Positions 22,279-44,168 of a DNA stretch of 64,000 bases are shown here, piece by piece (the first letter of the stretch is position 1; each line of letters opens with the position of its first letter). The position numbers were made by a program, and so were the translations under genes. The notes below the pieces were generated by a model, which had not been told where the DNA came from, ran no database searches, and saw only the letters and a program-made list of their open reading frames with translations. Location of the stretch: positions 124,001 through 188,000 of the forward strand of contig JAWMAR010001270.1 in assembly GCA_036785375.1 (NCBI GenBank), given 5' to 3'. Source of the stretch: Leucoraja ocellata. Lineage: Eukaryota.

Positions 22279-22333
22279 ATGTCGGTGAAAGTTAGAGTTT
22301 GGTCCATGGCTCTTCTGGTCATACTAACGCAGG
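22279..22333 (+). CDS. Gene A leader (signal peptide) exon, MSVKVRVWSMALLVILTQ
   Basis: ATG plus 18 codons with a hydrophobic core, ending in a phase-1 donor G|gtatag. Same length as the gene B leader. Confidence 0.85.
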
Positions 22334-25300
22334 GTATAGTTAAATTGTGTGCCATTTCTGGTCTAAGTATTATTTTTCGAAAATTCGGACCTGGTTTCGA
22401 GCTATTAGGTTCATCTATTAGGCGCTCGTGGGTTTATAGTTGTTTCGTGCTTTTCGACAGTTGGTTCCTGTTTTCTCTGTCCAGTATTTAAAAAAGTATC
22501 AATTGTTCTTGCTTTTTCCCCGACAGCTACCGAAGTCTATCCGACCAGAGTGTCCCAATTCCCTGCCATCTTGGACGTTGGCGGCGGTGAACATGCTATC
22601 ATGTATTGCACATTTCCAATATCGAAAGACACTATTGGCGTTAATTGGTGGAGGGACGGCATGAAGACATTCCTTGAACCGGACAGTAGAAAACAATTTA
22701 CGATAGATTCTGGAAGGGAAATATTTACTCTCCAACATGTGCGTGTCGCTGACTCCGGCCTGTATTACTGTCAAGTAAAGTTCCAGCATCAGGTTATCGG
22801 GAATGGAAGTGGCAGCCTGATCACCGTATTTGGTGAGTGTGTGTGTTAGGAAAATAAGCAATTTTCAGTTCTATGTCATTTGTAAAGTCTAGTCGCGAGG
22901 ATAATATGAAAAATCTCCTGTTGATAAATATCCGGTAATAACAATTTTAAATTACAGGGACCAGTAATTCAAAATAAAACAAAGCACAATGGACATAACC
23001 AGCAGGTCGAGTCGCACTTGTGGGACGCGTGGGTATTGAGGGTTATTCTGTTCATTGTACGATACTTTGCGAGACTCCTTTTCATTGCCGCTATGAATGG
23101 GCGCAGCCCATTCATTTAGCGGTCCCGAATTTTAAGCCAATCTCCCAGATGGATGTATCGCTAAGAACGGGTAACTGCTGAGATGGAAGGAATTCATTCT
23201 GAGGAGTGGTTAGAAATGTTTTGCGATGATATATTTAAATGATATTCCTGTTAGTTTGAGTGGCTGGAGTGTGATATCCAGGTTTCTCGTCACTAAGAAA
23301 AGAGAGTAGGAGCAATTTTAATACGTCGATGGTAGAGTCTGTCATGCCTCTATTCTACATCGACAGCTTTAGAACCTCATAAGACCAATGTGCTCCTGCA
23401 ACACAAGGACCTTGGTATTCCAACATGTGGGACTCATCGCTGCTGATTCCAAGCTACTTCAATGAAATCTTTTTTCTTTTTTTTGACATCGCTTGATACT
23501 AATTTTGTCAGGCATAACCTCAGTCTATTCAACCAATTTGGCACCGTACGGGGGAAAAAAGAAGTAAACAACATCTCAACTGAAATTATTTAAAGTCCGG
23601 GAATAAACAGTAACATTTATTTCATCATTAAAGATTATCCTGATTAAGTGAATTAAGTCAAGCTTTCTAAAGATTTGTAATAAACGGACAAAGCAACCCA
23701 ACATTCAACTCCCCGTCCAGTTAGACACCGACTGCAGCTCGTACGGAAGGAGTTCGCGTTAATAAATGCCAAATATAGGGCCTTTTACGTGCAGACCTAA
23801 CTGAGTAGAATCTGCACAGCGAGAAACAGAGCTTGTTCTTTTCCCTCGTTTGGCTTCTGCAAGCTATCATCATTAACGCCGATCTAACGTTGTCGATTCA
23901 CTGTCGCCAATTTAGCACAACAGATGGAACTGATTTGTATAGAGACACAAAATGCTGGAGTAACTCAGCGGGACAGGCAGCATCTCTGGGTAGGAGAAAT
24001 GAGTGACGTTTGGGGTCGATACCCTTCTTCAAACCTCGACCAGAAACGTCACCCATTCGTTATCCGAAGAGATGTTGCTGTTCGGTTTAAACCAGCTTTT
24101 GTAGTTCTTTCCTACATACTGACATAGAATAAGTGCGCTCGTAGATTGCTTGTAATAGAAACCACGGTGTTTTAATAAAAGCATTCAATGCGCGAGAAAG
24201 GTAGGTGTTCCAGCACTTGGTTCACATGCAGGTAAATGGTTGTGATCGGCATTTCAAACCCATATCTGGTTCTGGTTCTGGTTGATTACTGCGCAAACAC
24301 CTCATGTGGTTATCTCGCGCAGGTCGGAGTGAGTAGAGTAGAGTAGTGATTAAATGTTGAAGTGGGTGTTTTTGACCAGGGCGAGGAGATTTAGTTCATA
24401 TACTACTTAAAGTGCTAACGGGATTAAACATTAATCTTCATGTATAACCGCTTCCTGTCATCACACTATACAAATCTGTTATATTTCGATTATGATGGCT
24501 CCATTTCTTTTGCAACATATGAATGATCCGAACATGGCCACTTTTAAATAATCACGGCAGGCTTCTGGCAAAAACTTTCGCGCGATACCGGGGAACGTCC
24601 ATTCAGAACAGAGTTTATTTTGGAACTCCTTAAATTCTGTTGGCACTCCTTTAATTCACCCTCTTTGTATCTTGGTGGAGTTCGTCCGTGTGTCCGCTAG
24701 GAAAGGGAGTATAAATGAACGACAAACTGGGAAGTTTAAATATTAAATAATTTGGTCTTGACAAATACGACTCGGTGGCGAGATAAAATGTAAATATTTG
24801 CAATGAAATGGAAAGCGAACACCGATACATTTTTTTTTTTCTTTGCTTAAGATCCCCCAACTCCCTTGACAATTGTTCCTGCTGAAGGACTTGGATCTCC
24901 ACGGAAACTTGTGTGCAAAACTGGCGCCTTTTATCCGGAGAAATTAGAAATATTCTGGCTAAGAAATAACGAGGAAATTCGCACTGGAATCGAAACTGTG
25001 AAAAAACCGAGCGAAGAAGGATTGTTTGTGGCTACTAGTTCTTTGGAAATAACGCAGCCTGGGGAGGGCAAAGATATTTACACCTGTCTGGTATCACATG
25101 TCTCCCTGAAGGTGGCGGCCAGTTTCAGTTACACCCTGGGCCAAGGTAAGACTGGAGCCAGTTACACATGATATTGGGGCGGTAGATCAAATTCGATCAG
25201 ATTAATAACTGGACAGCTTTCCGTACACGGAGCGAAGGGTAAATGTGGCTCGCATTTATTCGCATGAAAGCAACACTTGCATGCTGTTTAAAATGAATTG

Positions 25301-28300
25301 CACTCCATCAGTTCTTGTAAGGAAATCCGTGTGAGATGAATTGACAAACTGAATTGATATAATGATTGTAATGAGCAAAAACGTCCTGGGATATGCATAT
25401 CTACTGTCTGGTGAAATATATGAATATAAAGCCTAAATTCCGTTTAACGTCAGTAAGCAGCTTTCCACACATGGGCACAATACAACGGCAATTGTTTGTC
25501 CTGTGGATTCCATTACTAACTTCCATCTGGTGCCTCATGATATACCTTCCAAACTTTCCGATGTGGGTATTAAAATGCACCTACGAAATGATTTGCCTTG
25601 TTGACTTCCGTTTGTATATTTGTTCTGAAATGTATAAATTCTTTACAGTTTCTTAATTTTCAGTTGCTTCATCAGGAATTGATCGCAAACAGATGATCGT
25701 ATATGCAGTAGGTGGATCAGTAATTTTAATTCTGATTATAATCGTGATAAGACTCAGCTTAAAGATATGGCACGGTAAGAATCTTGATAATAATCATACA
25801 ATAATCATTTCTATGGTTAAAACGAGAATGGATATGTCAATGGTGTTTGCTCACAGAGGAGAAAAGGAAACGTAGATGGACATGTAAAGAAATTTCTGAA
25901 GCCGGTTTTGATATATGTGTGTGATAATATGATGGATCTTCAAATTCAATTATTTCAGCTTGGAATTTGATGTATTCAATTATCACCTATGCATATATTT
26001 TCAAATATAAGGAATTTTTCAAATCCAGTGTGATTGACAATTAATGCAATGGAAGATTACGATTTTGAGGAAAAAATAACTGTGGCTTTCTGTGGCAATG
26101 AGCAAAACCAAACATCTCCTTATGTTTACATTACATTGCTGTTTCGACATGGACACGGTTCCTCATAAACCATTACAATTTTAAAGTTTCAGTTAAAATT
26201 TAGGTCCAGTGGGCGCAACATCGCGAAAGAGTACAAGATGCGTTGTATTGTTATAATTGTGACAATTGGTGCTGCTGAGCACCATCGGATATTTAAAAAT
26301 GCAATCGTTCTTATTTTCTGCAGTAAATTTGATTAAAATGAGAAGAATAATGTCAAAATCTACAGATCAATCTTTACAATTCAAGTTGTTTTTATGTAAC
26401 TCTTATTTCATTCCTCTAGGCCATAACGTAACCTCTGTAGGAATACGTCCGAACGGGGAGCCGGTAGGTGAAATGTCTCCTCTTGTTTCAAAATAGGGAT
26501 TATTCGTAGCAGAAATATTAATCAGTTTTATTCTATAGTATCGTGGAATACTCTAGGGCAGGATGAAACCATTATTTATTTTTCAGGTTACGTCAAGTAT
26601 ACATCCACTAATAATTTGAAAATTCCTGTTGTATCTGCTTCAACATCTTTTGACAATTCCATGCCAGATCATATCCTAATTTATTCTAAAGTGAAAGGTG
26701 ATGTTTAGGATGAAAATATGAGCCTTTATTAGTTCTGGTGGCAGGAATACTTAAAAATATACGGTACGGTAATTAAAATGAAAATGAAAAGAACCTTTGT
26801 CGAGAATTTAATTTGCTTTCTTGAGCCGTTCTTTAACGTGTTAATTGCAGTTTTGGCTTCGATCCTTAACGAAGGGCCATTTAACCGGATATCGTGGATA
26901 GGGGAGAACCAGTGGATGTGGTGTATCTGGACTTCCAGAAGGCTTTCGACAAGGTCCCACATAAGAGATTAGTATACAAACTTAAAGTACGCGGCATTGG
27001 GGGTTCAGTATTGATGTGGATAGAGAACTGGCTGGCAAACAGAAAGCAAAGAGTAGGAGTAAACGGGTCCTTTTCACAATGGCGGGCAGTGACTAGTGGG
27101 GTACCGCAAGGCTCAGTGCTGGGACCCCAGCTATTTACAATATATATTAATGATCTGGATGAGGGAATTGAAGGCAATATCTCCAAGTTTGCGGATGACA
27201 CTAAGCTGGAGGGCAGTGTTAGCTGTGAGGAGGTAGCTAGGAGACTGCAAGGTGACTTGGATAGGCTGGGTAAGTGGGCAAATGTTTTGCAGATGCAGTA
27301 TAATGTGGATAAATGTGAGGTTATCCGTTTTGGTGGCAAAAACAGGAAAGCAGACTATTATCTAAATGGTGGCCGACTAGGAAAAGGGGAGATGCAGCGA
27401 GACCTGGGTGTCATGGTACACCAGTTATTGAAAGTAGGCATGCAGGTGCAGCAGGCAGTGAAGAAAGCGAATGGTATGTTAGCTTTCATAGCAAAAGGAT
27501 TTGAGTATAGGAGCAGGGAGGTTCTACTGCAGTTGTACAGGGTCTTGGTGAGACCACACCTGGAGTATTGCGTACAGTTTTGGACTCCAAATCTGAGGAA
27601 GGACATTATTGCCATAGAGGGAGTGCAGAGAATGTTCACCAGACTGTCAGGACTGTCTTATGAAGAAAGACTGGATAGACTTGGTTTATGCTCTCTAGAA
27701 TTTAGGAGATTGAGAGGGGATCTTATAGAAACTTACAAAATTATTAAGGGGTTGGACAGGCTAGATGCAGGAAGATTGCTCCCGATGTTGGGGAAGTCCA
27801 GGACAAGGGGTCACAGCTTTAAAACCGAGATGAGAAGAACTTTTTTTCACACAGAGAGTGGTGAATCTCTGGAACTCTCTGCCGCAGAGGGTAGCCGAGG
27901 CCAGTTCATTGGCTATATTTAAGAGGGAGTTAGATGTGGCCCTTGTGGCTAAGGGGATCAGAGGGTATGGAGAGAAGGCAGGCACGGGATACTGAGTTGG
28001 ATGATCAGCCATGATCATATTGAATGGCGGTGCAGGCTCGAAGGGCCGAATGGCCTACTCCTGCACCTAATTTCTATGTTTCTATGTTTCTATGTTTCTA
28101 TATGGCCTACACGGCATCGAAACTGCTTCTCACAAAATTACTATTTTGTGCTGGCTGCTAAATGGAATCCCACAAATGCATCTTCCACTCTGCAATACTT
28201 AGAAGAAGAAATCTCCAAAATCTGCAAAAGACTGATATTCGTATTGGCACTGGTTAATTATTGTCATGTACACCGAGATTCAATTATAAACTTTATTTTG

Positions 28301-30140
28301 CGTGCAATCCGGAAAATGGATACCATGTATGGGTACAATCATACCATACCCAAGTGCAAAAAGGGAAATGACACAGGATGCAAAATATTGTGTTACAGCT
28401 AAAGAGAAATTCCACATTTTAAAAGCGCAAGGACCAGAACGCGGTAAATCACAGATCAGGATTGCACCATTAACTTGCTTGACGCCTGTTTAGTAACTTG
28501 ATAACATCGAGTATAAAGCCGTTTTTAAATCTTACACAAGGCGATTTCAAGCTATTCGTATTCTGTCCGCCGAGGGAAGAGGAGAGAATGACGGAAGCTT
28601 GTTTACGTGGTTGGCTGGGCTGCAATCACAGGTTCCTGCGTTTCTTAAGGTCCTGGGCAAAGCTGTCGCTAAACCAATTTGGGATTCATCCCCATATAAT
28701 TATTTCGACAGTGCAGCTGTGGAATTTGGGAAGAGACTTTGGAGACCGTCCAACTTTCCTTGGTCCTCTGGGAAGGTCGAGGCAATGGTGTGCTTTCATG
28801 GTGTTAGAATTAATGTGGTTGGACCAGTGCAAATTATTGGTGATGTTTATCGCCAGGAAACTCGACCAACACCATTATCCACCCCTTTCCTTGAAATGAC
28901 ATAGTTGGTAATATCATTGAAAGCAAGTGAAATGTTAATCTATTCCTCTATATCCCGCGTGCATCGATTTTCAGCCCCAGTTACAGTTCTAGTGCCATAT
29001 CAGCTATATAAGCCTGGTCACCCGCAGTATTAAATGTACTTTTCTAATAGGTGAGACAAGCACCAATTGAACATACCGCTGCCTATGCTACACTGAATTT
29101 AAGCGAGAGCAAAGGATTTTCAAATGGTCTACAAGAAGAACAACATGTCGCCTATTCACAGGTAATGCTCTTGGACAGCGTAATTTAGATATGGAATGAG
29201 CATTGTTCCAAATGTAGTTGCTTTTTCCAAACTGCAGGGAAAATATAAGTGCACAATGGCAAATCTTCATTTAAGTAAAACCTATCACCCGCTGCTCATC
29301 AGAGCATAAATATAATTTTCCTTTCCTTATTCGGGTTTAAATTCAAATGTAAATTGTATGTGAAGAAATAAAGGGTGGGAAGCTAGGAACACACAAACCT
29401 ACCCAGTTCTATAATCAGGGCGAAATTAAATACAAATGCAAGTCAATGGCCTGGGAAAAGAGAGTAAACAAGCCGTTCAAATTATCCACCGAATAGGGGA
29501 CTCGTGTCAAAAACTGGGGACGCAGAGCCATAGGAAGTAGTACCAACTTATATTCTATTGCATTTCGGTGCCACTGATGAAGCCGTGAGCCGCGGTGTCT
29601 ATTGGAGAGGTACCGGTAGCTTCAGTCTGCGAACCACCTCTTGGGCTCGACAGGCAAAATGGATTCCCGCCAATCCCACAAATACACTTTAAAAGGGGCT
29701 TCGAATTATGCCAAATATTTAATACTGCGGATACAATTTTGAGCAATCACCAATTCTCCTAACTTTCGTAATTACATCGAAGTTGACATAAACGAAAAAG
29801 AAAATAATTCTTTTGTGGGACAAGAACAGCTCCTCGCGTTTAAACTCAATATCAAGCAGAAAGGTATAGCCAAAAATAAATCTGCAAATCAATACCATTG
29901 TAAAAATAACAACTGATGGGTTGCATAAAATATTATTTTAAAGCAGTATGCTCAAATTCGCCACTGAATGATTGCCTAATCACCGATCATTAATTACTTT
30001 CGCAGACTAAAAGAGGTGGACATGACAAGCTGACCTACGCAACTGTGCAACATGACAACCCCAAGAAAACGTCAGTATCCAAACAGAACAAATACACGGT
30101 GTACGCAGATGTGAATACTTCAAAAAAGACGTGTAACTGA
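22279..30140 (+). CDS. Gene A: inhibitory-type IgSF receptor, L-V(J)-C1-TM-cyt with ITIM+ITSM, 314 aa. join(22279..22333,22527..22832,24852..25145,25664..25774,26420..26463,30006..30140)
   Basis: Six exons with canonical AG/GT ends and intron phases 1,1,1,1,0. Total 945 nt, open to a TGA at 30138-30140. Domain motifs are listed in the exon entries. Confidence 0.85.
22527..22832 (+). CDS. Gene A V-type Ig exon with germline J-like G strand
   Basis: Acceptor cccgacag|, donor G|gtgagt. Motifs VSQFP...IMYC...VNWWR...FTLQHVRVADSGLYYC...IGNGSGSLITVF. Confidence 0.93.
24852..25145 (+). CDS. Gene A C1-set Ig exon
   Basis: Poly-T tract and taag| acceptor, donor G|gtaaga. C1 hallmarks LVCKTGAFYP, W, and YTCLVSHVSL. 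Confidence 0.93.
25664..25774 (+). CDS. Gene A transmembrane exon (VASSGIDRKQMIVYAVGGSVILILIIIVIRLSLKIWH)
   Basis: ttttcag| acceptor, G|gtaaga donor, uncharged hydrophobic stretch. Homologous to the other TM exons. Confidence 0.88.
26420..26463 (+). CDS. Gene A short cytoplasmic linker exon (GHNVTSVGIRPNGEP)
   Basis: tttcattcctctag| acceptor and CCG|gtaggt donor. Its 44 nt convert phase 1 to phase 0, exactly what is needed to read the terminal exon in the ITIM frame. Confidence 0.7.
26890..28102 (+). mobile_element. CR1 LINE RT fragment in the last intron of gene A
   Basis: 342-aa ORF with YLDFQKAFDKVPH, GVPQGSVLGP and FADD; (tttctatg)n tail. Confidence 0.96.
30006..30140 (+). CDS. Gene A terminal exon with ITIM (LTYATV, 30030-30047) and ITSM (TVYADV, 30096-30113)
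   Basis: ctaat branch-like motif and tactttcgcag| acceptor. Translates to TKRGGHDKLTYATVQHDNPKKTSVSKQNKYTVYADVNTSKKTCN*. Not in the ORF track because it has no ATG. Confidence 0.87.
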   Translation, partial: TKRGGHDKLTYATVQHDNPKKTSVSKQNKYTVYADVNTSKKTCN

Positions 30141-30880
30141 CAATCCAAATAAGGTTTAGATGGTAGACTATTTGTTTGAGTATAAGCCCAAAGTTTAACT
30201 TGTTGCGTCCAGAATTTATAGTAATAATTGTTAGAGGGTAGAAAGCAAGTGACCATTTTCATCTTCGATGAAAGACAGGCTCACTGTTGGAATTTGTCTA
30301 TTGCAGATTAAAATAAGAATATACAAAGTAGAAGCAGCAATATGTTATTCATAACTATTAACTTTCATTCCTGGTCCGTATCGAACTTCTCCAAATGCAA
30401 ACGCTTCAAGTTATGCTTCTTGGATACCATATATTTGCATTTACATAGCGATCCTGCTGCGAAATGTTTGTCGAATGTGGTATTTTATTTCAAAGTGGGA
30501 ATTTGAAGATAGGGACAGAGATGCTAGCTACACAGAGATTTTGATAGGAAGGAAACGTTACAGCAGCTGAGTGAAAAAAATGGTCAAATGGTAGGTTCAA
30601 TGAAGATTGGGCGAGAGGGATTGGGGGTGGGGGGAAAGTATCTATAGCTTGGGACTTGCCTTAAATTAGTACTGAGATGGAATATCATTCCACACCAAAT
30701 TTCTTAGACAATAATACCTTTTGTGCAATTATCACACCATTTTGCTGGATATGGGTCAACGGACTGTATGGTACATGCTTGTAAATGAGTAAAACAAATG
30801 TTCTTCCTAAAGCACTGTTGTTTCTGGGATAGGGCGACTGGTTACAAATAAAGCCTTCTGAAAGCCCAGATATAAGACAT

Positions 30881-30989: not shown

Positions 30990-31438
30990 TATGGAGGGAG
31001 GGAGTGGCTGAGGGTAGGGGAAAGGAGAGGGAGGAAGAGGTGAGGGAGGGGGGTTGGGAGAGGAAGAGGAGAGAGAAAAGAGGGTGAAGAGAAGGCAGAG
31101 GGAATGCTGGGAGATGAGGGGGGAGGGAGGAGGATAGGGGTAGGAAGAGAGATGGCGAGGTAATGGAGGAGGGGAGGGGGAAGAATGAGGAGGGGCGGGA
31201 GGGGTGAGGGGAGGAAGCAGAGGGGGGTTGGTGGAGACTGGGGAGAGGGTGGATAATGGAGGAGGGGAATAGGAGACTGAAGAGGGAGAGTAGATGCGTA
31301 AACATTGATCTTATTTTTTACGTTATTGCCATTTTAAACTTTAAAAGCATCCGCCGCGCCTGCGCAGTTGGGAGCTATGGGTGAGTGAAGGAATATCGCG
31401 ATGGGGGAACGGGGCCCAACGAGTCCCACTTGGTCTAG
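30990..31438 (+). mobile_element. 3' part of the same Helitron-like family as 4216-5354
   Basis: Ends GGGGCCCAACGAGTCCC-acttggt-CTAG|T. Reverse complement matches about 4216-4320. Confidence 0.65.
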
Positions 31439-31969
31439 TTGACTTTGAAATCCAATATCAGCAGATCTGGTGACAGGTATAAGGGAAATGCAAGTTTCCA
31501 AAGTTTGGATGATGGTCACCGATGAGCTCATTAAAAAAACGGGGAAGGCTCTTGCACGGGGCTCTTCGGTTGCAACCAGCATGATGATGAACGACTTTGA
31601 AAAGTAGAGGGTATCTGATGGTAAGTAAAAATAAGCCCTGATTTTTTTAATCAGCCCATAACGCTTCAGAAAAACAGCGTCACTCTTCAGCTGTTCTTTC
31701 ACGAAGGCCCTGTAATAACACATTAATTGTTTGTGAACCTCATTCCATAATATGTTTGTGAAAATTGTTTAGTGCCACTGGATCCTGGCCCAGATCTGTC
31801 TGTGCACCAGTCTCCCCACGGTAAACAAAGTCACGCACAGGTTTTCCTCCATTTAGGGTATAGCATCCTGCAGCCACCCATGTTTGAGTCAATGGGTATG
31901 TGCATGTGGTGGATACAAACTTTAATTTGGACCTGTACCGTACAGACCTATGCATATGTCAATAAATTC

Positions 31970-32845
31970 AATAGTCAATAGTCAATAGTCTATTTAATTG
32001 TCATTTGGACCCCTGGAGGTCCAAATGAAATGCCGTTTCTGCAGCCATACATTACACACAAATAGACCCCAGACACAACATAATTACATTTTACATAAAC
32101 ATCCATCACATAGCTGTGATGGGAGGCCAAAAAAGCTTATCTCTCCACTGCACTCTACCCCCCCCCCCCCCCCCATGTCAGAGTCAAAGTCAAAGCCCCC
32201 GGCTGGCGATGGCGATTGTCCCCCGGCCATTAAAGCCACGCCGGGTGGTGCGAGGTCGCACACCGGGTCTTGGTGTTAAAGACCCCGGTGTGCGCTCGCA
32301 GAGTCCCGCGGCCATTCCAAGCCGCGCGGGGCAGTGATGTTAGGCCCCGCTCCAGGAGCTCTTCGACCCCGCAACTCGGGCGGGAGAAGTCGCCGTTGCA
32401 GGAGCCCTGAAAAGCGGTCTCGCTCCAGGGAGCCGCGGGCTCCCGGTGCCGCCGTCCGCAGACCCGCAATAGCAGCCTCCGCATCAGCAGCAGCAGCGGC
32501 AGCAGCAGCAGCGCTCCTCCACCGCTCCACCCGCTCCGGTCTCGGCCAGCTCCGCGACAGCGACGGTGAGTCGTAGCACCAGAGTCCCCGGCTTCTTCCT
32601 GTTGGAGGCCGCTCCTCGTTGCGGCCCCAACGACAACTGAGACCCGACGAGAAAAAGTCGGGTCTCCAGTGCAGGGAGAGATTCAAAAGTCCCCCCCCCC
32701 CCCCCCCTCCCACACCAACCCCGCCCCCCCACACACACACCCCAACATAAAATAACAAAAACTACATAAAAACACAGACAAAAAATAATAAAAACGCGGA
32801 CGGCTGCAGAGGCCGCTGCTGACCAGAGTCGCGCCGCCTACCGGA
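31970..32845. mobile_element. Unclassified GC-rich interspersed repeat with a (caatagt)n end and a CAG tract
   Basis: Abrupt compositional change and a short tandem tail typical of a non-LTR 3' end. Family not recognised. Confidence 0.45.
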
Positions 32846-33199
32846 TTCTACCAAATTCTACTTGACTCTATACATCACGAATGTTGTAATAATCTACATT
32901 TTGCAAACGAATAGGGAAATTAATAGTTCTCCTATAACCTTTCATGAGACATGGGAAATAGAAACTGAGACAAAACGATGTAAAAATAGGAAATCAAAAC
33001 GGTTGGATAGATGAACAGGTCAGACTGCAGGCTGGAGGGAAAAACGTTTAATATTTCAGACGAGGGATCCCTGATCAGAACTGTGAAATAGAGAAAGGTG
33101 TTAGCCTACTGAATATCAAGATTTTGAAGAGGATGATGGGTGGAATAAAGATAATTCGCTAATAAAATCATGATTAGATTTGATTATACCATGGCCGTG

Positions 33200-33573
33200 T
33201 AGAAAAATAGAACATAGGTGCAGGAGTAGGCCATTCGGCCCTTCGAACCTGCACCGCCATTCAACATGATCATGGTTGATCATCCAACTTAGTATCCCGT
33301 ACCTGCCTTCTCTCCATACCCCCTGATCCATTTAACAACAAGGGCAACATCTAACTCCCTCTGAAATATAGCCAATGAACTTGGCCTCAACTACCTTCTG
33401 TGGCAGAGAATTCCACAGATTCACCACTCTCTGTGTGAAAAATGTTTTTCTCATCTCGGTCGTAAAAGACTTCCCCCTTATCCTTAAACTATGACCCCTT
33501 GTTCTGGACTTCCCCAACATCGGGAACAATCTTCCTGCATCTAGCCTGTCCAACCCCTTAAGAATTTTGTAAG
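33200..33573 (-). mobile_element. CR1 3' fragment
   Basis: Minus-strand ORF TYKILKGLDRLDAGRLFP...FFTQRVVNLWNSLP. Confidence 0.9.
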
Positions 33574-33826
33574 TTGGTGCTAATTTGATTCTACCTCCGG
33601 GACAGAAGTGGAATGAAGAAACTAGAATTATGAGGTTCATAGACAGGGGAGATAGTCAAAAATCTTTTGTCAAATGGTAGGGGAGTCTAAAACTAGAAGG
33701 TGTATGTTTAAAACAAAAATTGATATATTTGGTGAGTACACGGAGTAATCTGCCTGGATGTTGTTGTCTTATGCTGCACGTCTCCGTTTTCCCTTTAAGC
33801 GAATGTATCTGCAGCTCGAGTTAATA

Positions 33827-33900
33827 AGAAATTCACAAATAGCCGAGACTAGAATTGCGCTCGCGAACTTGCTGATGACGTCGTGGAAACACTTTGTGGT
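33827..33900 (+). promoter_or_regulatory. Putative conserved upstream element of gene B (CRE-like / NFAT / RUNX motifs)
   Basis: TGACGTCG-TGGAAA-cactt-TGTGGT; paralogous to 17877-17949. Confidence 0.45.
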
Positions 33901-34009
33901 GAAAAGCAAAATGTCGCCTTCTTACGTTACAGATCAGAACGGCGATTTGAGCAATTTATGCAATAGCTTATTTCGGCGTGACAAATGTATGTAAAGTTGC
34001 TCCGAAAAG

Positions 34010-34860
34010 TCTGTGTTTCAATTCCAAGTCGTGTGTTTAGTTCAGTTTACTTCAGCAAATTATTGTCGCGTCTACCGAAATACAATGAAAAACAATTCAG
34101 TGCGTGCTGTCCTGTCAAAGAAAATACTATACATGAATACAATCAAGCCGTCAACAATGCACAGAGAAATTGTAACGGGTACAAAACTGAGTGCAAGATA
34201 AAGGCCAATGAAAGATGGTTCAAAGTTCTTATGTGAGATGGATGAGGTAGACGAGGAGCGCACTCTAGCTGATCAGAGGACCGTTCGTTCATTTGCCAGA
34301 TGACAGCTGGGAGGAAATTGTCCCTGATTCTGGAGATATGCGTCGGAAACTTCTGTAAGACTTGCCTCGTGTGAGAGGGGAGAAGAGTGATGGCCGGTGT
34401 GAGGCTGGTCCTTGATTATCCTGACGGCCTTGCCGCGGCAGATGGAGTGTAGACGGAGTCAATGGATGGGAAGTTGGTTTGTGTGATGGTCTGAGTTACG
34501 TCCATAACTTCTTGCAATTTCTTGTGGTCTTGGATGGAGCTGTTTCCAACCCCGTCTATAATACATCCCAAAAAAGTTGTTTACAATGTCTCTGTCGAAG
34601 TTGGTGGGGGTTATTGATGTCATGCCGAAATCCCTAATCCTTCTCAGGACGTAGAGGCATTCGTGGGCATTTCTGGCCATAGTTTCGACGTGGCTGGTCC
34701 AGGACAAATTGCGGGTGATATTTATTCTAAGGCACTTGAACCTTTCGACCATTTCTGCTTCGGTGCCATCAATGCATAAGTGGGGTGTGCACTGTTTCTC
34801 TTGCTGAAATCAACCACAGTCTCCTTTGTCTTGCTGACATTGAGGGAAAGGTTGGCTTGA
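34010..34860 (-). mobile_element. Degenerate Rex/Babar-type LINE fragment
   Basis: Minus-strand peptides NLSLNVSKTKETVVDF and VERFKCLRINITRNLSWTSH...LYVLRR. Confidence 0.7.
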
Positions 34861-34982
34861 ATGTTCTCAATCTCCTCTCTGTTCTCTGGCCAGAAATAAA
34901 ATGAGAATATATACTTCAACATTTTTTCCTGGAATTAATTTTTCAGTTATGATGAGAGACTGGGAAGGCTGTCTGTCGCATA

Positions 34983-36270
34983 AGGGCCTGTCCCACTTAA
35001 GGGTCTGTCCCACTAACGCGACCTTTCAGCGACTGTCTTCGCCCTTCAAGCTCGAGGGCACTTTCCTGAACAACCTCGAGCTGGATTGACCGTCAGCGAT
35101 GAAACCGCGAGCTGGATCGACCGACCGCACATACACACATCGCAAAAGCGGGGGCCAGGGGACGCGGGGGTGGGGTGGGGGCGCAGTCTGAAATTCACAC
35201 CCGCGATGAACAGGAACGTAAAAGACGACGGCACAGTGTACGGTAAGTCCTTTAGCGAGCGCGGATGGGAGGGGGGGGGGGGGGGGTGATGGGGAGAGAG
35301 GGGGAGAGAAGGGGGGAGGGGGGGTGGAGACACTTTTACGAAGCCAGACAACTTTTAATAAAGTTTAGCGGGCATTTAACCTACCGGTCGGTTTTCCTTA
35401 GCCCAGAAAACGCCAATGAGCCAATTAAATTACCCGGTCAGCCAAGGAGATTGCCTATGGCTGCCCTCGACTGCCTATAACTACACAGCGACCCCATTCC
35501 ACTGCACTACGAGTTCAAAGGAACCATGGCGAAGACAAATTTTCAACATGCTGAAAATGTTTCCTCGACCAAACTGAGGCATGGTTCCAGAGACCTCCTA
35601 GGACCACGTGTCGACCATGCTGCGAGTTTGAGTCGAGGGCAAACTCTTCTAAACTCGCAGATTAGGTCGCCTCAGTGGGACTGCCCCTTTAGGCGACTTT
35701 TTTGGCGAGTGCAGGAGACTCTGTGCTCACCACATGGTCGCCACATATTCGCTGATGGTCTCTGGTGAGTCTCCTTGGGATGGGAGATTGCAACCTTCAC
35801 GTGGTCCGCCCTGTTTCGACGAATGCAATCAACCCAGCGTGCACAATCAAATAAGATCAAATAAAACAAGTTGTCATACAAAATGTTGCTGCGACCAAAA
35901 ATTGGTCGCCACGGAGAAAATCGATAATCCTGTGGTCCTAAAGGTGCAGTCGTAGTGGGGTTACCATATAGTTGTAGGTAGTCGAGGTAGTCGTAGGAAG
36001 TCTTAGTTAATCGCCTTTGCTGACCGGTCATTTTCATTGGCTCATTGGGGAAAACAAACATAAGCACGAATTTTCAGAACTAAAGATAACCCACCGGTAA
36101 TGTTAAATGCCCGGCGAACTTCACATCTGTGTATCTCTGGCTTATTAAACGTTGTATGGCTTCTTAAAAGTGTCTCCACTCCTTCTCCCCCATTCTCCCC
36201 CCTTCTCCCCTTCTCCCCGTATCCCCTTCTCCCCTCTTCTCCCCTCCCTACTGCCCCCTCTTTTAAAGTT
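34983..36270. mobile_element. Outer related MITE interrupted by the 35000-35688 element; right end not found
   Basis: agggcctgtcccac-tta-ggcgactttt is reconstituted when the inner element is removed. Confidence 0.6.
35000..35688. mobile_element. PIF/Harbinger-type MITE with TIRs and TTA target-site duplication
   Basis: TTA|AGGGTCTGTCCCACT ... AGTGGGACTGCCCCT|TTA; TIRs match at 13/15. Confidence 0.8.
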
Positions 36271-37576
36271 CTTTCGTTTGCACACACGTTTGATCATCTT
36301 ATGTTCCTTCACACGTCACCTTTTTTGATTCACGTTTTGTTATTCATCTTACCATAATAACTATTCTTTGTGTGTTGAAAATGTGAACCTGAAATAACTG
36401 AAAGGAAATACATTTACAAAGATGATTCTTGAACAATTATAACTTTTAAAAAGCTACGTCGCACATTGCATTGACCGGGAACAAACTCCATTGACTATAC
36501 ACCTTGCTCATGCTGCTCTTTTAAAATTTGGCATCACAAGTTGTCAAGTGCTCAAATCTCCAAGAATGCAACAATTTTAAGTTAGCAGTCATACTGTAAA
36601 GAATTCTATTTTTTGTCTCTGAAGTCTTTTGTGGTCTTGGACGTATTTCTCCTTTTCTTTGATAATCGATTCTATGTCTAACAATTCAAGCTTTTACTTT
36701 AATAAACTCGCATCGTCTTTTGTTTGCTGATGTGGTCCCCTTCTCTTCAGTAATCGGGTTTTGTAATGCACATTTGGCCCTTGAATACCTTTGCGCGAAA
36801 GTTGCTGTTGCAAATATCTGCGAATGTAACAGATTAATACTTGGGAGCAAGGAGCTAGTTAATTCCTGAATTTTAACAATGGAAAGAGATTATAACATTT
36901 TTGCTTATAGTCACATATGGCACCACGGAGAAAGGTAGCAGAGGAATGCACTATATATTGTAAGCGAAAAAGAATGCAATCAAAGATTCAGTTGACTATG
37001 GGTTTCCCTTTCTAAATTCCTTGTGTGAAGAATTAGACGATCCGAATCAATAGCGAAAAACTCTTAATGGTACGCCGCCCAATTGCCATCTAGTGGACGA
37101 TCAAATCCTTATCAACAACATCACTTGATGTAATGCATCTCATTTAAATGCTGCAATTGAGGCTTGGAGTTTTTGGCTGAAATGAAAGAAATTCGCAGCG
37201 GGACTAACTCAAAGGTCATCACACCCTCCTGCATTCAAGGTGGGATAATCTGTGACAGAAATATACGAGGCTGAATAGTTGACAGCACTGTCATCTTATG
37301 CTCCGGTAGGACAAAGTCTCAATTTGAGAATGAGGTAGAGGTAAATGGATTTCAATATGTGTTGTCCAAACGCGGTGCACCTACAATGGCTGGGAGAGAA
37401 ATCATTTTGGAGTAGGAAATCGAAGAAAACATATTTCCTAGATCATACTCGCTGAAACATAAATATACTCAAAATGCATCACGATGCCTTAGTCATGTGA
37501 TTTACGGCGTTGGTGTCACACGCTTCAGGCATTCTATGAAAACCTATTTCTTATGCACACCCTTCTATTTTGCAGT

Positions 37577-37631
37577 ATGCCGGTGAAAGCAATGGTTCGG
37601 TACATGGGTCTTCTTGCTTTGCTTTGTCAAG
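37577..37631 (+). CDS. Gene B leader exon, MPVKAMVRYMGLLALLCQ
   Basis: 55 nt like the gene A leader, shares MxVK...LL...Q, donor G|gtatgc. Confidence 0.85.
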
Positions 37632-40600
37632 GTATGCTTAGTTTCTGTACCGATTTCGCTAAGCAAATCATATTTGACAATATTTTACACTAGTATGCCA
37701 CAGTAAATTAAATTTACAACGTTTCTACAATTGGCTAACCATTATTTCCTAATTGTTTTGTATTTGTGTATCCATTGGCTCTTTTTCTTGGTGCTGTATG
37801 TACAAATGTTTTCATCATATTTACTTATTTCTGCCACTGACAAAAGCAACTTCGAGCAAAGTGGAACAATTCCCCGCAATCCTGAAGGTCCCCAGGGGCA
37901 GAAATGAGACCATGTTCTGCAAATTTCCAATATTAAGAGAAACCGCTGACGTTTCATGGTGGAGAGAGGGCGAGAAGACATTTATAGAATCGGACAACAG
38001 AAAACAATTCAAAGTAGGCAAGGGAAGGAGCACATTTACTTTATTGAATGTGAGTGTCGATGACTTCGGGATGTATTACTGTCGAGTGAAACATCAACTG
38101 CAACTTATCGGCAATGGAACTGGCTCCCAGCTAATTGTGTTAAGTAAGTGTCTTTGTTACGAGTAGTGGGGTATGTTCTTCTGTTGCAATGTTACTAAAG
38201 CTTCCTGGTTGTGGAAATATTAATCTTAACTAGCTCTATAATTTTAATAGTTACTTCCGAGATGGAAATCTGAAATAAAGGGAAAATACTGAAAAATATT
38301 CCACCCGTCGGTCAATATACGTTCAGCGAGAGTTCTGTTATAGTTTTGTTTTATTTACTCCGGGTTATGTTAAAAAGTCATAGTGACGTTACCCTGGTTA
38401 TTGCTCTTGTAAATTGGCAGGTCACTTTATATTTTGACCTCCAGCTTTTCAAATACCCAACCAAATTCACGTTACTCCGAATTTCCAGAAAGTTGCAAAT
38501 TTCCCACGCCGACAAACTTTCACATCAACTAAAAACGGAGGAGAAATTGATCTCACAGTTTTGAGGTGGATAATTTTGTTTTCACATTCACTGTCTCCAG
38601 GAAAGTTCATGGAATGAAAAAAGAAAAAACAGAACTACAACTGAAATTCTCCGATATTATTTCTTTGCTTGGTAATTAATTATATGGCACAGGGAGTAAA
38701 ATGTACTATATCTTTATTAATTAATAATTATAGTACAATGAGATGTTATTACACAAATGAAGGAAAATAAATATGCTTAAACAGAAACGAGGTGATTACG
38801 CAATTAATTGCCAAAAAAAGGTACAATTAACTCTCCCGCTCGCTAAATATTACTGACAGTGGCTCCAGCACAAATGGAACCATGGTCGTTAATGTCTTGT
38901 TAATAAAATATATGAAATGAGAAACAGAGTTTGCTCCGTTCATCCTTGCGTGCTTTTCGAGAAAAGCAGTTGTCGCCGATGTACTTCTGCCATTCAGTGC
39001 AGTCCATTTTCTGTAACTACCATATGCACATAAGAAAGAGAAAATGTTCAGAAGAAATGCGTGATTTTGAATTCAACATAAAGCACTGTCACGGAATCTT
39101 ACCAAGCAATGGTCACATTCCTTCATAATAATCGCGCTAGGCAGCACTCCATTCATGCTTTGTTTCAATTACACTACTTACCTTGATATCCTCCGTAAAA
39201 TAATGTATAACAAAATTATAAACTCAAGAAACAACCACACGGATAACAGGAGGCAGCAGCAACGGTTCAGCGACAATTGTGTTCATTGAAATAAAATATA
39301 TTTTGCAGCTTCACGCTTTTTTTTTATTGTTCCAGCTCCCCCAACTCCATTGAAAATCGTTGCTATTGAAGGAAGTGCACCGCATTTGCCGCAACTCGTG
39401 TGTAAAACGGCTGCGTTTTATCCAATGGAATTAGACGTAATCTGGCAAAGAAACAACGTGGAAATTTTGACCGGCATTGAAACCGTGAGAAACAGAACAG
39501 CGGATGGACTTTATGAGGCTTCCAGTTTTTTGCACGACACGCAGCCTGCGCCAGGCAAAACTGTTTACACCTGCCTGGTATCCCACGTATCTCTTACAGC
39601 CCCTGCCAGTTTCAGCTACATTGTCGAGCAAGGTAAGCCGGGAGGCATTTAACGCAGACCCCAGCCTGCCGAGAAATACAATCCGAACAAGTCAAGTCAA
39701 GTCACATTTATTTATCTAGCACATTTAAAAAAACAACTCTCGTTTGCCAAAGTGCTTTACATTTGTTATAAGAATAGTATAAACAAGCAAACTACATAAT
39801 AGATACATATAGCCCGCGCTCAGTGGACGTCAGGAAAGACTTGGGAGTATAGATAAGTTTTATGTCTTGACTTAAAGGAGTCGATGGAGGGGCAGTTCTG
39901 ATGGGAAGGGGGTAGTTGTTCCACAGTCTAGGAGCTGCAACCGCAAAGGCGCGGTTGCCCCTAAACTTATGCCTAGACCGCGAGATATTCAGCAACCCCA
40001 AGTCGGCCGATCAGAGGGACCTGGAGGCGGAGTGGTGGGTGAGAAGACTTTTAATGTAGGAGGGGGCAAGCCCATTGAGGGCTTTGTAGACATAGAAGAG
40101 GGTCTTGAAATGTATACGGAATCGCACAGGGAGCCAATGGAGAGAGGCCAGGATCGGGGTGATGTGGTCCCTTTTTCGGCTGCTCGTCAGGAGTCTCGCT
40201 GCGGCGTTTTGGACCAGTTGCAGGCGGGACAGGGAAGATTGGCTGATCAGTGTAAAGGGAGTTGCAGTAATCTAGGCGGGAGGAGATAAATGTGTGGATG
40301 ATCTATTCGAGGTCATCAAAGTGGAAGAATTGTTTTATTTTAGCTATCGTCCGAAGCTGAAAGAAGCTAGCTTTTACCACGGCATTGACATGTTTGTCAA
40401 ATTTCAGTGCTGAGTCAAATATCACGCCGAGGTTTTTGACTGAGGTTTGAGTAGTTTGGTAAGGCTTCCAAGGCTGCCTGCTATCATTTTGATTGTCGGA
40501 GGGGCCGAGAAGGATTACCTCAGACTTACTCTCATTTAGTTGGAGGAAGTTCTGGGCCACCCAGCACTTTATATCCTCGAGGTTGCGGGTGAGGTTAAGC

Positions 40601-43600
40601 AGATTTGATTGTTTTTTGGGCTTCAGGGGGAGATAGAGTGTGTATCGTCTGCGAACAAGGGTCTAGATCCGATTCCTTTACCCCAGAGATGTTGCCTGTC
40701 CCGCTGAGTTACTCCAGCTTTTTTTGTGTCTATTTTCTAATACAATTAGATAGTTGTGCAAACACAAAAATCCAGTTCCTTTTCATATTTACTGGAACCT
40801 GTGGCGGCGGGTCCAGGGTGTCAGACCCAGAATATAAAATGCATTCTGACTTTGTAAACTGTTGTCAAAGTACCGGGCGTAGTTTTGTAAAATAAAAATT
40901 AACCCACATCTTAACATAATAACCAAACCTCAGCAAAGAGCCGCCGTATAATGTGATCTGTTCTATAAATTCGTCATTACAGTACAATGCGTGCCATGTG
41001 GCAGTCATAAAATCTTTGTGCAGAAATTATTGAAGCAGCGGTGAATTTCGTGGGCGAAGCTTGGCGCTTCGTTGTGCTTATGGCTGGCAGAACAGGGAAA
41101 TTCAGCCGATAGTATGAAATAAATGAACTTTGTACCTTCATTTATTGATCAGGGGTATTTTGAACTTGGGGCCAAAGTACTGCGTTGTAAACATAAATAA
41201 AATCCTTTTATCTTAATAAGCAAACCTCTTTACAATCTGCCGCAGTGTGTGTGATTTGTTCGTTCGGTACATTCCAATATTACCTTACAATTCATGGGCA
41301 ATGGAGGACCCGGCGTGGGGAGACCGCCGTGAGGCAGGGGGGAGGGAGGAGAACAACTGGGGACCTGGAGCGGGGGTACTTTGTATGCGCCCTTTATGGG
41401 CGACTATTTGCGTACCCTGGGTAGGCAAGCAAAGAATTTCACTGTGACGTGTCACATGTGACGACGAAGTATTGAATCTGGTATTTATTGCATATTTTAT
41501 GCAGGGAGGGTGGATAGATACCTTAAAATGCACTGCTTTTTTGTCTCCCTATTCCTGAATATGTGTTCCTATGGTTCACAGTTTCTTATGTTTCGCCAGA
41601 TCCAGAAACCACTGACAAAACACAAATTATTGGATGTGTAGTGGGCGGACTAGTAATTGTGATTCTGATCATATTTTTCACAAGATTCGGATTAAAGGCG
41701 CAACCGGGTAAGAACGTTGCATATTTGACCAAGTACTGCAATGTATCGGTTCTGTTCATTGATCAGAGACAGGATACATTCTATTGCAGCGCGAAACACG
41801 ATTTCAATGTTATTTACTGCTTGAAAATTGATAATAGCCGTCTATCTTTCAAGAGAGAACTAGATAGGGCTCTTCAAGAGAGAGCTAGATAGGGCTCTTC
41901 AAGAGAGAGCTAGATAGGGCTCTTAAAGATAGCGGAGTTAGGGGATATGGGGAGAAGGCAGGCACCGGGGTACTGATTGTGGATGATCAGCCATGATCAC
42001 ATTGAATGGCGGTGCTGGCTCGAAGGGCCGAATGGCCTACTCCTGCACCTATTGTCTATTGTCTATTTTCTATTGTCAGTCAAACACTGAATCTGAATAG
42101 AAAATTATTTCATCTGCCCCACACCTCCCTGGCATCACATATAACCCTTAAAGGTTCCTTCCAGTTTCAACTATTTGGTCAAACAAGGAAATGCAGGAAG
42201 CATTTTAAACGAGTTCTACGTCAGATTAGAAATACAGCTGCGTAGTTGTTCAAACACGAGAGATAGAAGTGTGAATTGTATTATTTGTGATGAAAGACCA
42301 ACGTGCAAGCAGCTCAAAAACTAATACCTCATTCAATGCATCCCGACTGAGATGAATTAACAACCTGAATTTATGTGCGGCTTATTTCATGGTAAACAAT
42401 CGTGAGTATATAGGACTGCGCGGCCAGATTCGGCTCAATATCCATCTACAAATTTGTAGACGACACCACGGTTGTGGGCCGGATCGCAGACAGTGGCATG
42501 TGCGTGTGTCCCTAGTTCTCGAATTCACTCTTAACCCCCTCTTTTACATCACCCATTGCTAAAATACGTCGTTACATCTTCACGGTATCTGCACGTATGT
42601 CCTATTATGTGGATCGATGACAAATTATACTGTTCAATGCTTCTGTTTTTTTTTTAAACTGATGTCTATTGCCTAGTGTAACAATATGAAAAAATAAATC
42701 TCTTCTTAACCTTAATCAATTATCCCCTACAGAAAGAGCTACTTTGTAAAGTGACGCGTTTGCTTGATAATTAAAACATTAACCCATAAGTGTTGCAATA
42801 TGTATTTCCTACATTATTTTTTGGTGGGTTGGAGCGTTACTTTTCAATGCTCTGCCTTATTAGCTTTTACTCCCTGTATAATTAATATGTCTTACGGTTT
42901 CTTATTTTTCACCTAATCCAGAAAGTACCTATAAAAGACTGATTCTCACACGTGCAGTGGGCGGGTTGGTAATTTTACTTTCGATTATAATTTTGACCAG
43001 ATTAGCATGGACGGCACAACATGGTAAGAACCTTGGATTGTTCAGTTATTTCAATTGTATTTCTAGAAAAGAGAAAATATGCGTTTTTATTCGGAATTAA
43101 ACAGAACATCCATAGTACCTTGGAGTGTTCAGTTATTTCAATTGTATTCCTAGAAAAGAGAAAATATGCGTTTTTATTCGGAATTAAAGAGAACGTCCAT
43201 AGTATTTACATATTTTACAGTTGGCTATACCAGTGTAACTGCGCCTTAAAATGCAATGATTTCAACTTTCCATTCGATGTATTCACTCCTCCCCTGAACC
43301 AATGCTTTTTGAACACCTGTGTTTATTCACCGAAATGTATCCCTCGTGAAAAACGAGAGGAAACTGAGTGTCCGCGAGCAAAGTAACCAATTTCAATCTG
43401 TCCAAATGGCCATGCCGGCTAATTGCAACAACCTGTGATCCGACTGACAAATGGAAGTGTATCACTAAATTCAGAATGGGAATTTACACCATGGCCTTGA
43501 CAGATGAAACTGGTTGCCAGCGATCAAACACAAATACATCAAAACGGCTCTGTGCAATATTAGTACTTCACATGGATAGTATCCTATGTGTTTAAGAATT

Positions 43601-44168
43601 TAACGAATCTCTTAATCTGGTCTACAATGTCGCCTGTTTGACGTTTGTTCCTTCTCCTTATGACCCCGTGGATTTATTCCGGGTGTTCCTGCTTTCTAGC
43701 ACATCTCAAAGATGTGTGGAATGGCGGGATAATTATCCCCTGTTAAATGCTCATCTGGTAGAGGACTTCTAAAGTTTGGGGGCGCAGGGGAGGTTAATGA
43801 CAATATGAAGAGAATAAAGTAGAATTTGGGTTAATGGGAGTTTGACGGTCGGCGCAGACTTGGATCCGCGTAACTACGACATAGTTCTGTGGACCAAGAT
43901 CGGCTCATGTAAAAATCGAGAAAAATATTGATATAAAATCCATATAACCTTTCTGCAAACTAAAATGTATAATTGTTGAGTACCTTAGAATGTTATTGGA
44001 AATAAAAACGATTGTTTTTACGATGGACTAATGGCCGATATGGAATTACTTCCACAGACTAAAGGAGGGGGAGCCAACAAGCTGTTCCGCATCTTCCCAA
44101 CTAATAACAAATCAACAACTAAGCAAAACGGCAAACACGCAAAGGTTTCAAAGAAAGCGAGAAGTTGA
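37577..44168 (+). CDS. Gene B: paralogous L-V(J)-C1-TM receptor with alternative TM exons and no intact tyrosine motif; 3' structure uncertain
   Basis: Exons 37577..37631, 37847..38143, 39336..39632, then TM1 41600..41707 and/or TM2 42922..43023, then a terminal-exon homolog from 44058. The ectodomain is fully open. Confidence 0.72.
37847..38143 (+). CDS. Gene B V-type exon with J-like end (IGNGTGSQLIVL)
   Basis: VEQFP...TMFC...VSWWRE...FTLLNVSVDDFGMYYC. Acceptor is aag| (weaker), donor A|gtaagt. Confidence 0.9.
39336..39632 (+). CDS. Gene B C1-set exon
   Basis: ttgttccag| acceptor, LVCKTAAFYP...W...YTCLVSHVSL, donor G|gtaagc. Confidence 0.93.
39688..40655 (-). mobile_element. L2-clade LINE fragment in the gene B C1-TM intron
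   Basis: Minus-strand FADDT, MAQNFLQLNESKSE...LGVIFDS and RAFAVAAPRLWN; (caagt)n tail. Confidence 0.88.
41600..41707 (+). CDS. Gene B TM exon 1 (DPETTDKTQIIGCVVGGLVIVILIIFFTRFGLKAQP), uncharged, GxxxG
   Basis: tttcgccag| acceptor, G|gtaaga donor, phase 1-1. Confidence 0.85.
42922..43023 (+). CDS. Gene B candidate TM exon 2 (ESTYKRLILTRAVGGLVILLSIIILTRLAWTAQH) with Arg in the hydrophobic segment
   Basis: Nucleotide paralog of TM1. The acceptor homologous to TM1's reads TA, but an in-frame ccag| lies 6 nt downstream. Donor G|gtaaga is intact. Could be a pseudo-exon. Confidence 0.55.
43030..43204 (+). repeat. ~88-bp tandem duplication just after the TM2 donor, specific to copy 2
   Basis: accttgga.tgttcagttatttc...tccatagt occurs twice here and once at ~1813-1899. 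Confidence 0.9.
44058..44168 (+). CDS. Gene B terminal-exon homolog lacking tyrosines (phase 0: TKGGGANKLFRIF...KARS*; phase 1: D*)
   Basis: Acceptor region and first 27 nt are homologous to the gene A terminal exon. Alignment breaks at the ITIM position. Confidence 0.55.
   Translation, partial: TKGGGANKLFRIFPTNNKSTTKQNGKHAKVSKKARS

Follow-up and report, generated by a model that had tools for sequence, protein, structure and literature searches.

The pairing of inhibitory with activating immune receptors has been characterised well in mammals, birds and teleosts and is poorly charted in cartilaginous fishes. A stretch of the Leucoraja ocellata genome raises the question of whether such a system exists in this group: for 64,000 nucleotides (nt) of contig JAWMAR010001270.1 (assembly GCA_036785375.1; hereafter the window), a reading made without database searches, referred to below as the sequence-only reading, had proposed that a gene A with an inhibitory tail stands beside a gene B without intact tyrosine motifs, the two being duplicated as one cassette. 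We find that the window belongs to a real paired-type receptor family, in which the role of gene B is that of a candidate only. With little more than even confidence, we read the locus as a tandemly expanding cluster of non-rearranging VJ-C1 genes (a V domain of the variable-joining type followed by a C1-set domain), in which A is inhibitory and B a derived, tail-less and possibly activating counterpart.

The window comprises about 1.55 units of a 41.1-kb tandem duplication, since a blastn comparison of the window with itself matches 1-23034 to 41211-64000 in seven blocks of 95.8-99.5% identity. Searches with exon translations (tblastn) place V-like exons at three positions (22527-22832, 37847-38143 and 63493-63798) and C1 exons at two (24852-25145 and 39336-39632). 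No further V or C1 exon was found in the window by a hidden Markov model (HMM) scan of all six frames, with which tblastn agrees, and a third full gene per unit is thereby ruled out. From the exon positions and the repeat, the order along the window is therefore the 3' end of a B copy, A, B and the start of a second A copy, A'. The B-A-B-A' order recurring at about 41 kb, as the sequence-only reading had proposed, is thus real in this assembly; so is its description of adjacent same-strand paralogs with a leader, V, C1 and transmembrane (TM) layout, all features lying where it had placed them. The span that it had delimited, 22279 to 44168, runs from the ATG of gene A to the stop of the frame of the last B exon at 44166-44168. 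Two features define the second unit:

41211-64000, no strand: second unit of the 41.1-kb tandem duplication (self-blastn against 1-23034)
63246-63798, plus strand: leader and V exon (V at 63493-63798) of gene A', the remainder lying beyond the window (tblastn)

Gene A (22279-30140, plus strand) is an intact receptor gene of seven exons, with directly read ag/gt splice sites throughout and compatible phases, and ray and shark proteins in RefSeq align to every one of its exons:

22279-22333, plus strand: A exon 1, leader, 55 nt, ending in phase 1 (ATG and donor read directly)
22527-22832, plus strand: A exon 2, compact VJ-type V with a J-like GNGSG motif at its end, phase 1 to 1 (tblastn, Pfam)
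24852-25145, plus strand: A exon 3, C1-set, phase 1 to 1 (Pfam C1-set, E 5.3e-12)
25664-25774, plus strand: A exon 4, stalk and uncharged TM segment, phase 1 to 1 (splice sites, relatives)
26420-26463, plus strand: A exon 5, membrane-proximal cytoplasmic, 44 nt, phase 1 to 0 (local alignment to relatives)
29051-29161, plus strand: A exon 6, cytoplasmic, with tyrosines in AAYATL and VAYSQ, phase 0 to 0 (tblastn with the relatives P0023, P0158, P0152 and P0174; splice sites)
30006-30140, plus strand: A exon 7, cytoplasmic, phase 0, with the two signalling motifs and then the stop (direct reading, relatives)

The V exon is 48-59% identical to the V domains of chondrichthyan relatives and matches the V-set, I-set and Ig_3 families of Pfam weakly (V-set 27.0 bits at a cut-off of 26). 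The C1 exon reaches up to 70% identity with ray relatives, and its matches in the PDB are beta-2-microglobulin/MR1, IgM and UrIg2. While the exons that the sequence-only reading had assigned to A were borne out, the small exon 5, with ag/gt sites and a pyrimidine tract that can be read directly, was missing from it and is added here.

The tail of A holds four tyrosines, the last two of which lie in exon 7 in LTYATV, a tyrosine-based inhibitory motif of immunoreceptors (ITIM; 30030-30047), and in TVYADV, a tyrosine-based switch motif of immunoreceptors (ITSM; 30096-30113), 22 residues apart. That A ends in an ITIM and an ITSM, as had been proposed, is upheld by the fit of both strings to the consensus given in PMC12151841. 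Exon 7 and the tails of ray relatives show 56-62% identity, and in an alignment of relatives the A-type layout recurs from chimaera to rays. By sequence, then, gene A is an inhibitory receptor. Phosphorylation of its tail tyrosines would enable the ITIM-ITSM tandem to recruit phosphatases of the SHP-1/SHP-2 type and thus to damp the cell; the residues with which SHP-type phosphatases bind are conserved in sharks, according to the same source (PMC12151841).

Gene B (37577-44168, plus strand) is open in all of its exons and has canonical splice sites:

37577-37631, plus strand: B exon 1, leader, equal in length to that of A (55 nt), phase 1 (direct reading)
37847-38143, plus strand: B exon 2, VJ-type V, open, with every family-invariant residue (tblastn, direct reading)
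39336-39632, plus strand: B exon 3, C1-set (Pfam C1-set, E 6e-9; tblastn)
41582-41707, plus strand: B TM exon 1 (TM1), uncharged, its variable site occupied by Cys, phase 1 to 1 (direct reading)
42922-43023, plus strand: B TM exon 2 (TM2), Arg-bearing, phase 1 to 1, with good acceptor and donor (direct reading)
44058-44168, plus strand: B last exon, tyrosine-free and homologous to A exon 7 (tblastn, direct reading)

The B V exon is 65-66% identical to those of Mobula P0019 and Narcine P0033; in Pfam it stays below the V-set cut-off (22.4 bits against 26) and passes that of Ig_3 (31.6 against 30). The Arg-containing TM exon that the sequence-only reading saw in B is indeed there. Its arginine (42951-42953) lies in the outer part of the TM segment, three residues before a conserved Gly-Gly, at a variable site that carries Cys in TM1 and Tyr in A. 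Only 15 uncharged residues separate the two arginines of TM2, too few for a membrane helix of normal length to leave both out. TM2 has kept a strong acceptor, a GTAAGA donor and an open frame despite about 50% divergence from TM1, which for its part has a second in-phase acceptor at 41599/41600. In the other unit, the copies of TM1 (372-497) and of the last exon (2756-2866) are identical, and that of TM2 (1705-1806) has 2 nt differences, both outside the TM core. In the intron behind TM2, at 43006-43200, a repeat of about 87 nt stands in two short tandem copies and gives a repeated peptide string in one frame.

How B probably ends depends on exons that it seems to lack. No counterpart of A exons 5 and 6 was detected in B or in a third set of TM and tail-like exons described below: local DNA alignments scored 17-21, within the range of shuffled controls (median 17-19, 95th percentile 21-23), and a tblastn search with P0033, a Narcine protein of the B lineage, matched the B leader, V, C1 and last exon with nothing in between. 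It is exons 5 and 6 that take A from phase 1 to phase 0. Joined directly to the ACT AAA of the last B exon, a TM exon that ends in phase 1 reads GAC TAA, an Asp followed by a stop. Because of this missing linkage and the resulting stop, B is probably tail-less, with a cytoplasmic stub of about 8 residues that would end one residue after the TM exon, and the peptide encoded by its last exon is probably untranslated. Of the tyrosine-less tail attributed to B, the lack of a tyrosine motif stands, both tyrosine sites of A exon 7 being replaced, and the translated tail probably does not, given the exon phases. The loss of the ITIM in B is derived, since P0033 retains LTYASL in its tail. A short-tailed partner without an ITIM is thus predicted in B from sequence features alone.

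Further exons of this kind follow B, which the sequence-only reading had not listed:

53134-53232, plus strand: third TM exon, uncharged, without a V or C1 exon of its own in the unit, copy at 11931-12029 (tblastn, HMM scan)
54443-54592, plus strand: tail-like exon of the third unit, copy at 13245-13394 (direct reading)

Pristis P0175 and Hemitrygon P0176 are the nearest matches to the third TM exon. The tail-like exon has kept two tyrosines, the flanks of which no longer fit an ITIM or ITSM, and its copy at 13245-13394 contains an extra stop. Either they serve B as alternative 3' exons, or they are what is left of a third gene.

The relatives of A and B place both genes in a large family. The A V exon alone, searched against 1.84 billion representatives, matched 448 proteins at E <=0.001, the best 150 of which were listed; exons were searched singly and never joined. 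Apart from giant multi-Ig proteins, the matches among these best 150 of 448 are 130-490 residues long and 35-59% identical over the whole V, and they show a leader, V, C1 and TM segment, often with an A-like tail. Among 20 representatives with species looked up, 18 were from Chondrichthyes, one was a Logan fragment and one a frog protein without C1. Word-indexed searches gave 33 of 34 and 47 of 48 chondrichthyan matches, with one Logan fragment remaining in each, the Logan fragments of all these searches numbering two. No non-chondrichthyan V-C1 protein was found among the listed V matches below 800 residues that were examined (the 20 with species looked up); as these searches rest on shared words or on the best 150 of 448, absence from bony vertebrates is unproven. 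In the searches made, this large VJ-C1 receptor family is found only in sharks, rays and chimaeras, in keeping with the proposal of a cartilaginous fish family on a VJ-C1 scaffold. The genera represented are the rays Mobula, Hypanus, Hemitrygon, Narcine, Pristis, Amblyraja and Leucoraja, together with Heterodontus, Heptranchias, Chiloscyllium, Hemiscyllium, Stegostoma, Scyliorhinus, Carcharodon, Mustelus, Pristiophorus and Callorhinchus.

No name has been agreed on for these proteins. RefSeq labels them automatically as, among others, SIRP-alpha-like, NCR3 ligand 1-like (B7H6-like), Ig lambda-like, tapasin-related-like, TCR beta-like, PD-L1-like or CD276 homolog. No description of the VJ-C1 family was found in a full-text search of main texts; genes of this type may be listed in supplementary material, namely Note XI of the elephant shark genome (PMC3964593) and the supplements to PMC12227049 and PMC10751288. 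The sequence-only reading had left open whether the family was described: its members do sit in RefSeq under inconsistent names, and we found no paper on the family.

Additional proteins extend this picture. P0044, P0178, P0101, P0064 and P0057, and P0114, P0155, P0156, P0187 and P0190, are further family proteins of shark classes, one class having a TM segment with an Arg towards its outer side and Asp-His or Glu-His towards its inner side, another a WWIY-type TM segment, a Cys-Lys-rich juxtamembrane stretch and tyrosine-free tails in five listed proteins. P0061, P0073 and P0141, also among the V-exon matches, are multi-V proteins without C1, the tails of which carry an ITIM-then-ITSM-like pair.

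Pairing is best seen at the level of the family. Thresholds of at least 45 bits for the V profile and at least 60 bits for the C1 profile yielded 71 retrieved proteins, 58 with a TM segment, which fall into three classes:

21 of 58 TM proteins: ITIM/ITSM strings in the tail; charge in the TM core in 3 of 21
25 of 58 TM proteins: no motif, tail of <=60 residues; charge in the TM core in 12 of 25
12 of 58 TM proteins: long tail without motif; TM charge not counted

Of the three motif-bearing proteins with a charge, two come from sharks, have short tails and match the motif by chance, and a neutral TM segment is found in 13 of the 25 short-tailed relatives. Charges recur at or beside the TM2 Arg site of B: in Mobula P0164 and P0168 an Arg stands one residue off, and P0160 has Lys. 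A charged TM residue is present in B TM2 and recurs among relatives, use of the exon and docking of an adaptor being putative. A near-identical partner ectodomain is seen in Mobula birostris, where P0159 (ITIM tail) and P0164 (Arg-bearing TM segment, short tail) have about 93% of leader, V and C1 in common and unrelated TM segments and tails; it is not seen between A and B. A quick maximum-likelihood tree was computed for 53 V domains. It groups B with Narcine P0033 and with P0019 and P0018 of Mobula at a support of 97 (Shimodaira-Hasegawa-like approximate likelihood ratio test, SH-aLRT), places A and A' in a 23-row stingray/manta clade (95) and sets both lineages within a ray clade (97). The C1 tree (45 rows) agrees with weaker support, giving 99 for the ray clade and 93 for A as sister to the stingray/manta set. 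The proposed paired family therefore holds as a family, with its VJ-C1 scaffold, ITIM and ITSM, charged short-tailed members and duplicating cluster, and finds no support as a claim that A and B form a tight pair.

Between the two A copies, the V exon is a divergence hot spot. Between A and A', 20 of its 306 nt differ, against 55 of 2069 in flanking non-coding DNA (Fisher p = 0.0012), a divergence 2.4 times faster, and none of the 55 nt of the leader exon; the V domains are 86% identical in protein. Fourteen of the 18 changed codons are non-synonymous, and non-synonymous (dN) and synonymous (dS) divergence are 0.064 and 0.088 (dN/dS 0.72). As this ratio is below 1 and dS is raised as well, gene conversion explains the fast V exon as well as selection does.

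RNA evidence on B comes from four raw-read runs with the same species label and unstated tissues, 5-32% of each being read over 39200-44600. One run (X16) reached a depth of <=1.7 over 43906-44600, and all other depth over the B region lies on interspersed repeats (40648-40828 and 41734-42095), with reads that are 95-99% alike and have loose ends. They are from repeats expressed elsewhere in the genome, not from gene B. The repeats at 41915-42095 and 40648-40828 reach depths of about 150 to about 3760 in all four runs.

Several points weigh against reading A and B as inhibitory and activating counterparts. Ectodomain identity between the two is only 54% for V and 59% for C1, which makes a shared ligand doubtful, and, judging from the trees, A and B are old paralogs of different ray lineages and not a recently split pair. 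The 12 of 25 charged TM cores in short-tailed relatives and the 3 of 21 in motif-bearing ones are not independent counts, because these relatives are predicted RefSeq models, some of them isoforms of one gene. The position of the TM2 Arg, near the outer end of the helix, is ambiguous, and use of the TM2 exon is putative; a short linker exon that escaped detection could restore the tail frame of B, and retention of the TM1 intron would append a chance TKYCNV string by read-through. Positive selection on the V exon is not claimed at the observed dN/dS. Moreover, the C1, TM1 and TM2 exons of B have a depth of 0 in the four RNA runs, and none of the sequence records listed as containing the B stretch is on record as RNA. 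As the tissues of the runs are unstated, this zero depth is not a negative, neither showing nor excluding expression of B.

It is possible, if rather doubtful, that B is a decaying relic that fell out of use after it lost its linker exons, so that only A would be functional and the Arg codon and extra TM exons would be leftovers. The empty RNA depth, the loss of exons 5 and 6 and of both tail tyrosines, and the stop gained by one copy of the third-unit tail are in line with such decay. However, V and C1 of B (98 codons each), its leader and all its TM exons are open, with canonical splice sites and every residue that is invariant in the family, and the B lineage predates the split of Narcine and Mobula, whereas a long-dead gene should carry stops or frameshifts; the RNA runs, partly read and of unstated tissue, do little to strengthen the case for decay. 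We regard as unlikely a functional and non-activating B, a tail-less decoy, co-receptor or ligand-like protein with a neutral TM segment, A and B then being subfamilies with different ligands. This would agree with the distance between the A and B ectodomains and their different lineages, with TM1 being uncharged and first in order, with the neutral TM segment in about half of the short-tailed relatives (the 13 counted above) and with the many B-like proteins that RefSeq auto-names B7H6-like, but it leaves unexplained why TM2 retains its frame and splice signals despite its divergence from TM1 and why charges recur at or beside its Arg site.

Equally improbable, in our estimation, is a more elaborate proposal, in which B would select one of several mutually exclusive TM exons, be it the neutral one, the one with Arg or perhaps that 9 kb downstream, as a splice-level switch of a single ectodomain between a silent and an ITAM-coupled form (immunoreceptor tyrosine-based activation motif) in a non-rearranging receptor of the oldest jawed vertebrates, and the family would stand near the ancestor of SIRP and PRARP and near the stock of the antigen receptors. 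Finally, the cassette duplication could be an assembly artefact, with two haplotypes placed in tandem and A and A' as alleles. The units are 96-99.5% identical, their N runs lie at matching relative places, and the 6.5% difference of the V exon falls within the range of polymorphic immune genes; yet the junction of the units is continuous sequence without N, and the divergence of the blocks is uneven, from 0.5% to 4.2%, which leads us to consider an artefact very improbable.

Our preferred reading of an expanding cluster with an inhibitory A and a derived B could work as follows. A cluster of non-rearranging VJ-C1 type I membrane receptors would expand in tandem, and B would descend from an ITIM-bearing ancestor in a different, older ray lineage. 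Having lost both exons that join the TM segment to the last exon, B would yield a message that stops one codon past the TM exon. Of its alternative TM exons, that with Arg may couple to an ITAM adaptor, and B would then be activating or at least non-inhibitory. A recent tandem duplication copied the whole B-A unit, the V exon diverging faster than its flanks.

If this is true, sharks, rays and chimaeras own a large, fast-evolving VJ-C1 family with ITIM/ITSM-bearing and charged short-tailed members, which would be a candidate for natural killer (NK)-like or myeloid sensing of self and non-self at the base of the jawed vertebrates. It would also offer a test case for activating forms arising from inhibitory ones through exon loss, and models of antigen-receptor origin would gain a further non-rearranging VJ-C1 set beside UrIg, SIRP and PRARP. 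As a practical gain, proteins that now bear at least seven contradictory RefSeq labels would receive a consistent name and gene models.

Runs of N lie at 5355-5582, 46694-46967 and 49973-50100, the first two occupying an equal relative place in both units. A reverse transcriptase open reading frame (ORF) of the long interspersed nuclear element (LINE) type lies at 26894-27922, in the intron between exons 5 and 6 of gene A (Pfam RVT_1, E 4.1e-20), and related LINE fragments are scattered over 19679-20394, 27427-28104, 33200-33575 and 60858-61547. Of ten other ORFs of the window scanned with Pfam, one matched at E <=0.01, as reverse transcriptase. Between A and B, 31000-36300 is of low complexity and richer in G+C (0.44-0.49), with long open frames on both strands that are rich in Pro, Ser, Gly and Ala; two of these ORFs gave no match in Pfam.

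Among known systems, a profile built from 13 proteins of the family has UrIg2 (9dmx, V and C1, E 1.1e-34) among its PDB matches, together with SIRP-alpha (2wng, V and C1, E 2.5e-26), SIRP-gamma (2.5e-22) and numerous antibody chains (light chains about 1e-23), scores that multi-domain chains raise through extra C1 domains. No solved structure family stands out as nearest. The ectodomain thus bears no specific SIRP signal, because UrIg2 scores better and antibody light chains about equally. The mammalian SIRP family (alpha, beta, gamma) is similar in its VJ-like V followed by C1-set domains and in an ITIM member beside short-tailed members with charged TM segments, and RefSeq names many relatives 'tyrosine-protein phosphatase non-receptor type substrate 1-like'. 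SIRP proteins have two C1 domains, in contrast to one C1 exon per gene here and one in most relatives; with their single C1 exon, A and B do not qualify as SIRP by the V-plus-two-C1 layout. The four-tyrosine tail of A may be SIRP-alpha-like, a lead only; the search with the P0152 tail (residues 254-380) reached Heterodontus alone (5 of 5 matches, among 64 candidates).

Receptors and ligands with simpler ectodomains are more distant. The compact VJ-type V matches NKp30 (NCR3) weakly (E 0.016); NKp30 is a single V without a C1 domain and is ruled out because A and B have a C1-set exon. NITRs, which are teleost receptors with a V or V/I ectodomain and no C1, are ruled out by the same domain. B7H6 (NCR3LG1) has the V-C1 layout, and many relatives are named 'NCR3 ligand 1-like' in RefSeq; it was not among the best 60 PDB matches of the V exon, the C1 exon or the family profile.

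PRARP genes, reportedly described by Fu et al. in J Immunol in 2019, are said to be non-rearranging VJ genes with C1, a TM segment and a possible ITIM in bony fish, amphibians and reptiles; we know of no report of them from cartilaginous fish. By that description, the VJ-C1-TM order with a possible ITIM would fit the architecture of A. In PMC10751288, PRARP is cited among VJ genes of the major histocompatibility complex. UrIg and UrIg2 of elasmobranchs share with our genes a non-rearranging VJ followed by C1, UrIg2 being what the family profile matches best in the PDB apart from antibodies. They differ in having several C1 domains, nine after the VJ in nurse shark UrIg2 according to PMC12227049, whereas the genes here have a single C1, a TM segment and a signalling tail, and we reject membership on this architecture. 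The words 'ITIM', 'ITSM' and 'inhibitory' are absent from the main text of that paper, as far as it is available (PMC12227049).

In their mode of evolution, the genes resemble KIR, LILR/PIR, CD300, chicken CHIR and teleost NITR, in which ITIM receptors likewise yield short-tailed forms with charged TM segments in fast-duplicating clusters. To our knowledge, none of these families has a VJ-C1 unit in its scaffold, and we know of no member with two or three alternative TM exons per gene. Activating forms arise recurrently from inhibitory KIR and Ly49, as stated in PMC2213150.

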